Shown in pieces: positions 5,179 through 18,435 of a DNA stretch of 26,388 nt. Made by a program: the position numbers and the translations under genes. The stretch is from assembly GCF_006345805.1 (NCBI RefSeq), contig NW_021835568.1:1-26388 (forward strand), read 5' to 3'. This DNA is from Octopus sinensis (lineage: Eukaryota). Numbering within the stretch: position 1 is the stretch's first letter; the number at the start of each line of letters is the position of its first letter. The notes beneath the pieces are model-generated. The model searched no databases and was not told the origin of the DNA. It saw nothing but the letters and a program-made list of their open reading frames with translations.

Positions 5179-5193
5179 CCCGCCTCTTACATC
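5179..5193 (+). CDS. Candidate 15-nt micro-exon of the unknown membrane-protein gene (gene A)
   Basis: Acceptor ttttgttgtattttacag and donor gtaagt. Open in all frames (xPPLTS in phase 2). Confidence 0.5.
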
Positions 5194-5596
5194 GTAAGTC
5201 TTCCTTTATTATCTCATGCTTATCAAAATGTCGTGGAGCAAATATGAATAAATCTCAGGGAAATATTTATTTAGTCGTACTCGGATGTTCTTTTAGTATA
5301 AATTTTACCGTTACCATGAGAGAAACACGCATTTTTGTGTGCAAAATTCACTCATATTTATACCGCTGTGTGGAGGACATATGTCGGCTCTACTTAAGAT
5401 AAATAGCTAATGGCAACACCAGCGCCTGTCCTGACACTGTGAATCTATTCAGCGCTGGCATTGAGATGAATCACTGCTGTCTCTTGAGATCGAGTGTCCA
5501 TCATTGACATGATGAAACAACGTTGAGATCACATGATCTGGCGGTGTCAGCACTAGAAGTAGTGATGGATAAATCTTCACTTTTCACTATTTTTAG

Positions 5597-5654
5597 CGAT
5601 TTGAACCTCCAACGCTTAAGAAATTTAAACACGTGGACGTTTGCCAAAAAGCCA
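5597..5654 (+). CDS. Candidate 58-nt exon of gene A (alternative 5' path; RFEPPTLKKFKHVDVCQKA)
   Basis: Strong acceptor cttcacttttcactatttttag and donor gtgaga. Fits the downstream frame only if the 6112 donor is used. Confidence 0.35.
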
Positions 5655-5856
5655 GTGAGAGAGTTTCTCTCGTAGTAACTGCTGTAGTAATGTATGTTCT
5701 AAGAGAGCATCATCGTTTACAGAGGAGACAAATATTACCTCTCAATATATATATATTGACATGTCGCTAATATATTTTACCAATGAATTACGTAGAAAAT
5801 CCAGCTAGCATTTCAAATATTCTTTGATTAATATATAGACATGTTTGACTTTCAAG

Positions 5857-5880
5857 GAATATATCATGCGACGGATATAC
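5857..5880 (+). CDS. Candidate 24-nt micro-exon of gene A (NISCDGYT or RIYHATDI, depending on path)
   Basis: Acceptor tttgactttcaag and donor gtatga; length is a multiple of 3. Confidence 0.45.
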
Positions 5881-6068
5881 GTATGATGAAATAATTTTGA
5901 CAAATTAATTTTCAATTAATCAGAGATTTTGCCAAAGCACTTGCGCTTAATATAGGAAAGTAACTAGTGCATGTGGATTTTAAATAACATGCATGATGAT
6001 GACTAAATCGGAATACATTCAAACTGTTAGGGAATGACATAGTAAATTTATTTCGAAAAATACTTAAG

Positions 6069-6152
6069 TGAAGAAGACACAAGTTTATGCTTGTATCATA
6101 TCGAAATTTATGTAAGGAGACAATTCAAGGAGCGCAATAAGTTTATTACAAA
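6069..6152 (+). CDS. Candidate exon of gene A (EEDTSLCLYHIEIYVRRQFKERNKFITK); boundaries ambiguous
   Basis: Donor gtaagt at 6153; 84 nt, phase 2-2 and open. Weak AAG acceptor; alternative acceptor at 6116 and alternative donor gtaagg at 6112. Confidence 0.45.
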
Positions 6153-6529
6153 GTAAGTATTCTTTCAAATATTGATTAACAATTTTACACATACACTACT
6201 CTTCAAAGAATATAATTGATGAAATAAATTCATTTTTTTATTATAGTATCAAATTAAGATTCGTCCCTTTCGTAAGTGAATTGGTGTAAGTAGATTTATA
6301 AATATTTTCCTACTTCATGTTTAATTGTTTCTATATTTATTGCTGAAACAGAACTTGTATTTGCTACAAGTGAATAACTATATTCTGACATTCATAAACA
6401 TAAGTATTGTCGTGTATAACTTAAATGATTTTCATATTACCTAAATGGGTAAATATAAAAATGAATTCATTATGTAGATACATACATAAGCATACATATA
6501 TTGTGTTTTACACTAGGTACAGGGTCCCC

Positions 6530-15291: not shown

Positions 15292-15341
15292 ATTATGTAA
15301 AGCTGTAAAGAAGAGTTTCACCAATATCCTATCATGGGAAG
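15292..15341 (+). CDS. Gene A exon, 50 nt, phase 2-1 (LCKAVKKSFTNILSWEG)
   Basis: TACTAAC branch site at 15261-15267, acceptor ctctatattgcag and donor gtgcgt. The only open frame links phase 2 upstream to the phase-1 last exon. Confidence 0.72.
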
Positions 15342-16855
15342 GTGCGTTACAAACAAAAAATGTGTCACACAGAAAATATTCTGTGACTAACCATTTTCCG
15401 ATATATCTATATTAGAGGCAGAAAATATTTGCACCTAATACATTTTCAGGGATCTGTCCAGTTTAGCACACAGATTTTTTTTTAAACTAAGCAGTTTGAA
15501 ACTTCAGGTACTGGTGTAATTCCTCACGCAGAATACGGTTTAGTTTGAACATCTCTTACGAAAGTTTGTACTTTAGAACTAATTTTGTGTTAACGTTGTC
15601 GTATTAGGGTGAATTTAGCCAATCACTAAGGTGTATTCAGCTGATGAAATATACTGGGGTTTGCGATAGGAATCAAAGAGGAACAACGTCCGGGTCACCT
15701 GTACTAAATGCCAGCACACTGTTCTGTTCCTATGTCATTCTTTCTTCCTTTCTAGTAAGCACCGTGCATTCCTTACTCCTTCCCTCTCTACTGTCAGACA
15801 GGCACTCCTACACTATCGACTCCCAAGCAACGAGTGAACTAGTCACTGTCACAACAATTACACTATTTTCCGCTGCATAAGTCAATATGTTTTACCTGGA
15901 ATATTTAGTGTTTGGCTCATAGAAAAGTACGCTTATATGTGTACATTTTTGATAGTTTCAGGACGAAGATTATTTGTGTATCGAGATCGACTAATTCCAC
16001 TGACTTTTTTCAGATGAAAGGTCGGTTGGCTAACATCGCGAAATACTATTAGGGTCCGGAAGAAAACTAAGTATATTTGTTTTCTTTTACCTTTATCCTT
16101 TGATAATATTATTTTTTTTTATATTGACGAAATGTGTTTTTTGTTGATTATAGTAAGATAAAATCATTAAAATTTCAATATATCACATAGTTGTAACATA
16201 AGACATGTTGAAACTATATATACTTCAACAATAAAAAAGATAGCTGCGGACCCATAGCTGTATAGGTCTTTTAAAACTGGTGCGGTTTATGTGTAGATAA
16301 AACCAAACATTTCCCCAAACTACAGACCTGCACTTTGAATACTGATGTCGGGCAACAAAAAAATTTAGGTAAATAGTATTTATTCATTCTTCCTGTTAAT
16401 TCGTCATTGCTTACTGAGTACTCCGATGCGATAACCAAAAAGAAAAGCGTGTAATATGCAACACAGGCTGTAAACAACAATGAAATAGAAAACTATTGTG
16501 CCATTTAGTAGAGATAAGCCGGAGGTCGTTCCTATTCGCTTACCCTGGAAAACAGCAGTAGATTTCTTCAACTGAATATACGCCATTAATTGGTGAGAAT
16601 TGCCGAAATACAACAACTTTAGCACGAAATGACTTCTAAAATAAGTTTTTTTTCAAAAATGGTGAAGGTAAAATGTGTTCTGCATGAGAGGTTACACTAG
16701 TATATGAAATTTTCAACTCTTTAGTTTAAAAAAAAAACGGTAATTAAAAATCTGTGACCAAAACTAAAGGGATCATATATTAGCATATTTTTCCCTACCT
16801 CATCGCATTAGATTATATATCTCATATAATCCTACTGATGAAAAGCAAATCAAGC

Positions 16856-17070
16856 ATTATATATATATATTATATATATATATATATATATATATATATA
16901 ATATATAATATATATATATACATATATATATATGCATATATATATATATATATATATATATATATATATATATATATGTATATATATATATATATGTGTG
17001 TGTATATATATAATATATATATATAAGTATAATATATATATATATATATATAATATATATATATGTATAT
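16856..17070. repeat. (AT)n microsatellite; further blocks at about 17360-17420, 22820-22900, 23955-24050 and 25160-25655
   Basis: Directly visible; source of the IY-repeat ORFs. Confidence 0.95.
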
Positions 17071-17091
17071 AATCAATATAATCCACAAGGA

Positions 17092-17230
17092 TATCCAGAG
17101 GTAATGCAGCACGATCGTTCCATGCTACTTCGTTTCATTGAACAATGCAAACATCATATCGATTTAATACGTAGAGTATATTCACAAAGAACAGTCGCAT
17201 GAAACGATCGTACTACATTACCTCTGGATA
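17092..17230. mobile_element. MITE of about 135 bp with 34-bp terminal inverted repeats and a TA target duplication (Tc1/mariner-type)
   Basis: tatccagaggtaatgcagcacgatcgttccatgc (17092-17125) vs gcatgaaacgatcgtactacattacctctggata (17197-17230); 3 mismatches. Confidence 0.85.
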
Positions 17231-18301
17231 TACTTGCTGCTTATTGTGATTATAATCACCTTTTTTTTAAATTGTATGGATAATGTCATACTAAATTGTT
17301 GCGCCACAACGTAAGTACCATAATCAAAAAGTTTTACTGAACTTCTACACGCACACACGCATATATATATATATATATATATATATATATATATTATATA
17401 TATATATATAATATATATATATAATAACAATTAATAAATAAAACATATGCAAATATACATATATATGTACGTATATATATATATTGCCCTTTTTAGTATG
17501 AAATCTGAGGGTTGCATATTCTTCACATCGCCTATTATCATTCTTTGGCATTAATCTTTCGACAATAATCCCACCCGCGAGGCTACAACGTTATCAATAG
17601 TTTTACGGAATAACTGCGAGGCGAGCACTAATTGTTTGAAATATTTACACACACACACACACACACACACACTGGCAATCACACACATCACACACACACA
17701 CACACACACATATGTATATATTAACCATGTTTCCAATTATACATCGTACATATGTAAGCGAATTATTTCTATTAATTTACTCGATCAATGTAATATTAAT
17801 TATATATTTTAAACGCATTACGAGAGAAGAATGAAAGTGAAATATTCACGGTACATCCTAATTAAATCGCGTAAAATTAGTGAAAGATTTGAATTCCTTA
17901 ACTTATGACAGTTTCATTTTCTCACACGCGTCAGCCAATGTCTCAACACTTCAACAAAACATGATTTGAGTACAGAGGGTGGAGGTTTGTACGTTAAATG
18001 GAACATAAATTCAAATCGTCTGGGACTTAAAATGGAACCTTTAGATATGCGTTTCAAGCATGGATTGGAATAATGATCAAAAAGATGTACGTGGAGATAA
18101 CTTAATTCCGCCAAAATTTATAACTGTTGCAATTAAGTGTTAGACTGATGTTCACGATGTGCAAGTCTGTTTTACACTCACAAAGGAAAGGAACAACTAT
18201 GCTTCAGAAGCCTACAATTCTCAATTGGATTAAGATAATATTGATAATTCATGAAATAATAAATTATATTCTTATAAAATTTCATTTTTTGTATATTGCA
18301 G

Positions 18302-18435
18302 GAGAACCTCCTACAACCACAGAAAAAGATAACGGGTCTAAAGTTAAATACCAACCATGGATGGGATATGTATTATTAATCTGCGTTATGATAGGCGGAT
18401 GTTTGGCAATTTGGTATCATTACAGACGCAAATGA
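18302..18435 (+). CDS. Gene A last coding exon: Pro/Thr stalk, transmembrane helix and basic tail (GEPPTTTEKDNGSKVKYQPWMGYVLLICVMIGGCLAIWYHYRRK*)
   Basis: Acceptor ttttttgtatattgcag, phase-1 start matching the previous exon, about 20-residue hydrophobic stretch ending in RRK, and stop TGA at 18433-18435. Confidence 0.78.

Follow-up and report, generated by a model that had tools for sequence, protein, structure and literature searches.

A tandemly duplicated orphan gene family of Octopus with a long run of symmetric phase-2 exons

Introduction

In the arthropod gene Dscam1, tandem in-frame alternative cassette exons encode Ig domains of a surface receptor and are used in a mutually exclusive manner. 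Schistosome micro-exon genes (MEGs) place most of their coding region in very small exons of 6–81 bp, mostly 15 bp (PMC10526429, PMC4350168); accelerated evolution has been reported for them, and the architecture has been described as restricted to flatworms (PMC4350168). Here we describe a gene on an unplaced scaffold of Octopus sinensis (RefSeq assembly GCF_006345805.1, contig NW_021835568.1), which we analysed as a complete stretch of 26,388 bp, hereafter the window. A first-pass annotation, made from the letters alone, had proposed that positions 5179–18435 hold a hidden multi-exon gene of symmetric phase-2 micro-exons, encoding an unrecognised single-pass membrane protein and possibly analogous to the MEGs. 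We find that the gene is real, its architecture unusual and its family an orphan of Octopus. Our reading, to which we give a probability of roughly 0.7, is that the window region contains exons 7–14 of a 14-exon gene of ~303 codons, which belongs to a family of cell-surface glycoproteins that is confined to Octopus and has duplicated in tandem. For cephalopods, our literature searches found no counterpart to MEG-type architecture, and searches for the LOC identifiers and for cephalopod micro-exon genes found nothing relevant.

Results

The gene is not hidden, since RefSeq already annotates it in truncated form as LOC115231305 (XP_029657221.1, here P0001; an ‘uncharacterized protein’ of 126 amino acids), whose product is 100% identical to the joined 3′ peptide of the first-pass annotation. 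The RefSeq model begins at an internal ATG at 9200 within the 36-nt exon and uses part of that exon followed by the 27-, 54-, 93- and 50-nt exons and the transmembrane (TM) exon. It is a truncated stump of a larger gene, and it is truncated because exons 1–6 lie off the scaffold: these exons, including the signal-peptide exon of the window copy, are upstream of the scaffold start, which falls 3′ of the exon encoding SDNSL and inside the intron before the exon encoding PPLTS. The eight coding exons that we accept in the window are the following.

5179–5193, + strand: 15-nt coding exon, (P)PLTS(S), phase 2/2, exon 7 of 14 and the first on the scaffold; AG acceptor, gtaagt donor.
6247–6285, + strand: 39-nt coding exon, IKLRFVPFVSELV, phase 2/2; RefSeq model P0006 includes it.
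9187–9222, + strand: 36-nt coding exon, DEKFMKEIRFEI, phase 2/2; gtaagt donor; homologous 36-nt exon in P0016 and P0011.
9783–9809, + strand: 27-nt coding exon, KHNTDNWRD, phase 2/2; gtaagt donor; 27-nt exon kept in P0016 and P0011.
12568–12621, + strand: 54-nt coding exon, REIRRQDVASVLFQDARF, phase 2/2; gtaagt donor; in the LOC115231305 model.
13417–13509, + strand: 93-nt coding exon, LKGFRALIDDFEKYIFKCLDETHRMIFVENQ, phase 2/2, bearing conserved Cys 3; gtgagt donor.
15292–15341, + strand: 50-nt coding exon, LCKAVKKSFTNILSWE(G), phase 2 to 1, bearing conserved Cys 4; gtgcgt donor.
18302–18435, + strand: last coding exon, with a juxtamembrane linker holding an NGS sequon, the TM helix YVLLICVMIGGCLAIWY and the basic tail HYRRK; stop codon at 18433–18435.

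The 15-, 36-, 27-, 54-, 93- and 50-nt exons, like the TM exon, are all bounded by AG, open, and in frame with one another. Their coordinates and donors in the first-pass annotation were confirmed by gene models and by intact orthologue and paralogue copies. The models of paralogues P0002, P0004 and P0006 have PPLTS at the equivalent position, and its exon is 15 nt long at loci L001, L002 and L003. The proposed 24-nt exon exists in another form. Read at 6248–6271 it gives an in-frame stop; the true start lies one base earlier, and the true 39-nt exon runs to a second gtaagt donor, ending at 6285. This exon is 39 nt long in 5/5 genomic copies, with a single synonymous change, and is homologous to 39-nt exons in distant members (FLDFFGELV in P0011, FSGFLGNIA in P0014, and also in P0016). 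The 93-nt exon is intact at L002, L007 and L008, yet is skipped by O. vulgaris models, and the TM exon has 1 mismatch in 134 nt to the O. vulgaris orthologue. When a single fixed splice-site and pyrimidine-tract filter was applied to 5–18.5 kb, it returned five symmetric same-phase segments on the + strand and one on the − strand. The exons thus exceed what chance would give, and homology decides the matter.

The complete plan of the gene is seen in a collinear O. vulgaris orthologue at a 68-kb locus (L002; OX597818.1, ~101.52–101.59 Mb) with 94–96% identity to the window. All 14 of its exons are intact, with coding lengths of 44 (signal peptide)/102/72/96/135/15 (SDNSL)/15 (PPLTS)/39/36/27/54/93/50/131 nt, a total of 909 nt or 303 codons; the signal-peptide exon lies at position 16686 of the locus and introns 1–12 are in phase 2. 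We mapped models to six loci with a chained mapper that resolves GT–AG boundaries; exon coordinates and phases were examined in the window and in L001–L006. In every member mapped, each intron between the exon for the signal peptide and that of 93 nt is in phase 2, and each exon enclosed by these introns is a multiple of 3 in length. The uninterrupted series of phase 2/2 exons numbers 11 in the window's clade and also in P0016, and 9 in P0011. The internal exon lengths (nt) are as follows.

Window's clade: 102 (one to five genomic copies), 72, 96, 135, 15, 15, 39, 36, 27, 54, 93.
LOC115220522 (P0016): 84, 96, 138, 33, 30, 39, 36, 30, 27, 54, 93.
P0011: 81, 96, 129, 27, 39, 36, 27, 54, 93.

The positions and phases of the introns in the 39/36/27/54/93-nt series are common to the window, L001, L002, L005 and L006, and the exon plan is shared with paralogues at only ~25–48% identity to the window's clade (by blastp or alignment against P0011 or P0014). 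Phase-2 introns are the rarest class, making up roughly a fifth to a quarter of introns, and twelve in a row cannot be chance. The run points to growth of the gene by same-phase exon duplication, of which twelve consecutive phase-2 introns kept across paralogues at ~25–48% identity would be a clean case. Mapping in the window, the orthologue and the paralogues bears out the earlier view of a multi-exon gene built of symmetric phase-2 exons.

A signal-peptide-like exon (MRN followed by hydrophobic residues) stands at the N terminus of paralogues P0006, P0007 and P0014–P0016, in the orthologue and at window position 24452. In members of the window's clade a 34-residue repeat (NALNSTTAEEIQND.KT.LQ.EVT.TI..TPKLR) occurs once or several times, and every copy holds an N-glycosylation sequon. 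There are two conserved modules with two Cys each, the first matching KSR.HAWE.FFMS..CS...F..KL.Y..SI...M.K.WD.PY...LLFPIY.FK....CF...F..PF and the second [DNK]W.D...[IV]...D[IV]..VL..D.RFL..F.....F..[YH]...C[LI]........KFC, and the linker between them is encoded by the micro-exon cluster (15/15/39/36/27 nt). The C-terminal part consists of a short Thr/Pro-rich stalk and then an anchor, which in the window is a 17-residue hydrophobic helix followed by HYRRK. Copies of clade II have a longer cytoplasmic tail (RACYKPRRDT...), which supports a type I transmembrane topology, and we infer a type I membrane protein. In the ectodomain, the glycosylated 34-residue repeat would be accompanied by two modules of mostly helical structure, with one conserved Cys pair apiece and the micro-exon-encoded linker between them. 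A tail-anchored protein, an idea that came from the 126-residue model, was rejected on the grounds that the full-length relatives and the orthologue open with a signal-peptide exon and that the ectodomain has sequons and Cys pairs. Our best guess for the biochemical role is an extracellular recognition or adhesion molecule.

The same exon-phase plan, signal peptide, four conserved Cys and C-terminal hydrophobic anchor are found in the close clade (LOC115231142, LOC115212221 and LOC115231167), in the homologous LOC115222984 and in a distant clade (LOC115220522/220523/220626 and LOC106881475/881480/876345). Unlike the window's clade, the distant clade has no 34-residue NALNSTT repeat exon and has an RxKR site with a hydrophobic Gly-rich linker. 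RSKR, RRKR or RRKRRS, on its own 27–33-nt exon, opens the linker of the distant clade and of P0011/P0033, and in the distant clade a Gly/Phe/Leu-rich amphipathic stretch comes after the basic site. In the window's clade RISDNSL replaces the basic site and the linker is charged (IKLRFVPFVSELV DEKFMKEIRFEI); this clade has lost the furin-type RxKR site. The two clades also differ at the C terminus, where the window gene has a TM helix and HYRRK. The distant clade instead has small residues (SGA) and then a hydrophobic tail that is without basic cytoplasmic residues, an ending more reminiscent of a glycosylphosphatidylinositol-anchor signal.

We found relatives only within Octopus. A profile search of 1.84 billion representative proteins returned Octopus sequences and one dubious repeat protein (P0013; 1149 amino acids, highly repetitive), which matches the linker weakly in six stretches (E 7e-6) and is probably spurious. 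Among 5.8 billion proteins, a word-indexed search matched only ‘uncharacterized’ or ‘hypothetical’ proteins of O. sinensis, O. vulgaris and O. bimaculoides. The family profile matches its relatives with E values of 1e-23 to 1e-100, and homology spans both Cys-pair modules. Pfam scans of the window protein and of close and distant paralogues gave nothing above threshold (best TMEM214, E 0.05, and Syntaxin_2, E 0.007), and a profile search of PDB sequences gave 0 matches at E ≤ 10. AlphaFold2 models of P0001 alone and of P0014 with a 12-sequence family alignment were all-helical and unreliable (predicted local distance difference test (pLDDT) scores of 53 and 43, respectively); Foldseek with the poor P0014 model gave no match in PDB or BFVD at E ≤ 0.001. 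The product can still be described, as it was at first, as a single-pass membrane protein of no recognised family; the searches add that its relatives are in Octopus only.

Isoforms were compared at the level of annotation, as RefSeq and GenBank models. Every internal exon would be an in-frame cassette that the spliceosome could keep or drop without breaking the frame, and the family would make sets of ectodomain variants. One array is in LOC115231167 (L004 10212–20334), where the 102-nt NALNSTT exon is present in five tandem copies spaced ~2.4–2.5 kb apart. The last two copies are degenerate with disrupted 3′ ends, and the RefSeq isoforms combine the first three: X1–X4 use A+B+C, A+B, B+C and A+C, that is, the three-exon form and every two-exon combination of the copies used. 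Elsewhere in the family, the 39-nt exon is dropped exactly in O. sinensis LOC115220522 X2 and in O. vulgaris CAI9733803 (P0031). LOC106881480 X3 and X4 are without exactly the 30-nt exon, X1 and X2 being one codon apart at an acceptor, and LOC106881475 X3 is without the 96-nt exon. O. vulgaris models of the window's clade omit 36-, 39- or 93-nt exons although the genomic copies are intact. The NCBI pipeline normally builds alternative RefSeq variants only from aligned transcript evidence. Since RefSeq isoforms of sister genes drop exons of 30, 39, 96 and 102 nt, the family probably makes sets of ectodomain variants, and we regard cassette variation within it as probable.

The accepted exons have 4 mismatches in 409 nt to the O. 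vulgaris orthologue, against a non-coding background of 2.5%, with a ratio of nonsynonymous to synonymous change (dN/dS, or ω) of 0.24. Comparison of the clade-I with the clade-II copies in the array gives a dN/dS of 0.25 across 732 nt. The first, N-terminal Cys module is nearly invariant between these clades (6 differences in 303 nt), and the differences are concentrated in the 102-nt repeat (13/102) and in the 36-, 27- and 54-nt exons (21/117). Positive selection was considered and is unsupported (ω 0.24–0.41). At about 0.25, dN/dS among the copies is purifying and not obviously diversifying. The sequences are those expected of functional genes under constraint with a variable patch, not of wholesale diversifying selection.

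Three further exons of the first-pass list, of 48, 63 and 84 nt, are not supported. The candidate 48-nt exon is an exon-like conserved element:

8791–8838, + strand: exon-like conserved element with conserved splice-like sites; rejected as a conserved coding exon.

The element matches the paralogue without a mismatch and lies within a 58-nt identical run of the divergent part of the alignment between the window and L001; the only longer run there overlaps the 93-nt exon with its donor. In the four other copies (4/4; the O. vulgaris orthologue L002 and the three paralogous copies L001, L007 and L008) its length is 49 nt by gapped alignment and by direct extraction alike, and this version, if included, shifts the frame into an immediate stop. 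A T-run at window 8794–8799 is one base shorter than in those copies and is the sole cause of the 48-nt, in-frame state; the difference may be a homopolymer assembly error. The element was not found in any gene model or distant homologue, and may be a pseudo-exon, a poison exon or a non-exonic conserved patch. The 63-nt exon (9293–9355) measures 63/64/63/64/64 nt over five copies, with a stop in L007, weak donors (gtacaa/gtccaa) and 7/63 mismatches to the orthologue, against the 2.5% background. For the 84-nt exon no credible candidate was located: the sole one found (7654–7737; donor gttgtc) is in a stretch that aligns to nothing in paralogue L001. In the joined peptide, the opening 16 residues (NFSQRGWQKAISHLHY) and the bracketed segment are outside the conserved protein. 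Overall, about two-thirds of the proposed exon list stands; the 24-nt exon as placed and the 48-, 63- and 84-nt exons were wrong or unsupported.

In O. vulgaris, OX597818.1 carries three family genes head to tail within ~215 kb, in an uncollapsed array at ~101.37–101.60 Mb. The window also contains the start of a further member, identified with a regular expression.

24452–24495, + strand: first coding exon of the next array gene, encoding the signal peptide MRNVIFVLILSVSL and ending in phase 2; gtaagt donor.

This exon is 97% identical to the start of LOC115231167 (L004) and 81% identical to that of LOC115212221 (L003). It lies ~6 kb downstream of the stop codon and is apparently without a RefSeq model on the scaffold. 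The O. sinensis locus of LOC115212221 (L003; CM016863.1, ~95.0 Mb) consists of the 5′ part of gene 1 to just past the 39-nt exon and then of the 3′ part of gene 3, with an abrupt switch from gene 1- to gene 3-orthologous sequence at ~28078. L003 is probably a collapsed tandem duplication in the O. sinensis assembly, and LOC115212221 is probably a chimeric model with a spurious last exon (FCHL and stop). Apparently, the window and also L001 and L004 are unplaced remnants of the array. In practical terms, the O. sinensis assembly seems to collapse this tandem array, and the collapse and the remnants would account for the truncated (LOC115231305) and chimeric (LOC115212221) RefSeq models.

Several side observations concern the array and the remaining sequence. 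In the middle array gene of O. vulgaris, the TM exon (L007 ~11448–11657) is interrupted by a stop codon in frame (GGCGGA to GGCTGA) and, near its end, has lost a single nucleotide at each of two sites, and this copy may be decaying; its GenBank model, P0003, has a different 3′ end that sidesteps the damage. Window positions 1–3650 hold, on the minus strand, a decayed non-LTR (long terminal repeat) retrotransposon with RVT_1 and zf-RVT in broken open reading frames (ORFs), in the intron upstream of the PPLTS exon. Positions 2418–3658 (1241 nt) are perfectly identical to paralogue scaffold L001 within surroundings that are ~5–9% diverged, which suggests recent gene conversion or an assembly artefact. 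The intron between the 27- and 54-nt exons contains a large palindromic block (one arm pair, 10410–10516 and 11414–11520, is 107 nt long and 99% complementary), flanked by two tRNA-like, SINE (short interspersed element)-looking copies at 9990–10060 and 11543–11620 (ggaggcgc.atggcccagtggttagggcagcggacttgc...ttcgattcc); ARAGORN and Rfam found nothing in these tRNA-like repeats. A near-perfect 84+84-nt palindrome without spacer (9400–9567, 96% complementary) lies just 3′ of the 63-nt segment that we rejected. ATT/AAT, GAA and TA microsatellites of great length (1310–1390, 3660–3830, 4320–4650, 19240–19420 and many (TA)n tracts) give rise to the long artefactual Ile/Leu-rich ORFs in the ORF list.

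Discussion

Our reading of the locus as the 3′ part of a cassette-built Octopus surface glycoprotein gene has several points to its disadvantage. The signal peptide and exons 1–6 of the window copy are not on the scaffold, and no transcript-derived family protein was found in the protein collection searched. The description of the modules as helical is weak (pLDDT 53 and 43). The isoforms are known as RefSeq or GenBank models, and the O. vulgaris skips (P0002, P0003 and P0005, which are without the intact 93-nt exon) may be prediction artefacts, which arise easily because the exons are symmetric. Skipping the 96- or 93-nt exon would also lose a conserved cysteine, which argues against a function for those isoforms.

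A rival reading is that of an ordinary, constitutively spliced, lineage-specific membrane gene, in which the symmetry is a by-product of exon duplication and the skipped isoforms are noise or artefacts. Plain purifying selection (dN/dS ~0.25 overall), the near invariance of the N-terminal module between clades (6 differences in 303 nt), the loss of conserved cysteines in several skips, the omission of an intact 93-nt exon by O. vulgaris models and the failure to find transcript-derived proteins are all consistent with such a gene. It explains less well that the same 39-nt micro-exon is dropped in the models of two species (LOC115220522 X2 and O. vulgaris P0031), or that RefSeq lists all two-exon combinations of the three used copies among the five 102-nt exons of LOC115231167, given that RefSeq variants normally need aligned transcripts; we consider constitutive splicing a serious though somewhat unlikely explanation. 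That the exons are chance open stretches bounded by AG...GT in DNA that is rich in repeats and resembles introns, or the fragment of a dead gene on a scaffold of junk, is scarcely credible in view of the homology. The scaffold is indeed unplaced, rich in transposable elements and microsatellites and without the 5′ exons, and the 48- and 63-nt candidates do look like chance or decayed segments, but the product is 100% identical to a RefSeq protein, 8/8 exons are intact and more conserved than their flanks relative to O. vulgaris, and the exon plan is common to paralogues at ~25–48% protein identity.

The sister clades raise a further idea, that of a furin-activated pro-protein or a membrane-active (fusogen-like or peptide-releasing) protein, with the N-terminal module as pro-domain or receptor-binding part, the hydrophobic segment after RxKR as active peptide, and a helical stalk and TM anchor. 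In these clades RSKR, RRKR or RRKRRS on a dedicated 27–33-nt exon is followed directly by ...ALGKAAL..FSGFLGNIASEGL.GFLGIGD and, further downstream, by a helix, a Cys-x13/14-Cys loop and a C-terminal anchor. The window's clade, however, has RISDNSL for the basic site and a charged, not hydrophobic, linker; Pfam gave no match to a viral or fusogen family, Foldseek with the poor model gave none in PDB or BFVD, and the model has short helices only, without long heptad-repeat helices. We judge this idea very improbable for the gene in the window. A class I viral-type fusion glycoprotein was rejected, given RISDNSL in place of RxKR in the window's clade, the short helices of the model and the lack of a Pfam or Foldseek (PDB, BFVD) match.

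The Octopus surface-glycoprotein family that we favour can be set beside two known systems. The five in-frame 102-nt copies of LOC115231167, which encode an ectodomain segment, recall the Dscam1-type arrays, and differ from them in that the copies are used in combination, in having no Ig domain and tiny numbers, and in lying outside the window.

The likeness to the schistosome MEGs is broader. Shared features are a signal-peptide-like exon, a long run of multiple-of-3 exons, long introns and 15-nt exons, together with lineage restriction, no recognisable domains, tandem or multi-copy families and, in the annotation, isoforms that differ by whole small exons (PMC4350168, PMC10526429). The differences are also clear: of the 909 coding nt of the octopus gene, exons of ≤36 nt hold 93 (10%), and those of ≤81 nt hold 39%; its product is membrane-anchored by a C-terminal TM helix whereas MEG products are secreted; it has two conserved Cys-pair modules of disulphide type and is under purifying selection (dN/dS ~0.25) whereas MEGs show accelerated evolution; and there is no sequence homology, the host being a free-living mollusc and not a parasite. 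No relationship to the platyhelminth MEG family was found in the profile search of 1.84e9 representatives, which returned Octopus and the one dubious repeat protein. The analogy drawn at first is apt for the symmetric exons and fails for a micro-exon gene in the schistosome sense, with only ~10% of the coding sequence in exons of ≤36 nt. An MEG analogue that may make variable surface proteins is nonetheless a reasonable reading.

A stronger version, that octopuses independently evolved MEG-like variable surface proteins in which the 11 symmetric phase-2 exons act as combinatorial cassettes, yielding tissue- or cell-specific ectodomain repertoires for recognition, we regard as unlikely. If it were true, the cassettes would include the tandem 102-nt exons, the furin-site micro-exon and the amphipathic-linker micro-exons, and the repertoires might serve recognition among cells, for instance, or among gametes or the surfaces of skin and suckers. 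A convergent, membrane-anchored, MEG-type design in a free-living mollusc would then mean that the design is not a speciality of parasites, and would add a splicing-based source of surface-protein diversity for cephalopods. We conclude that the Octopus family is MEG-like in design and is not a member of the MEG family.

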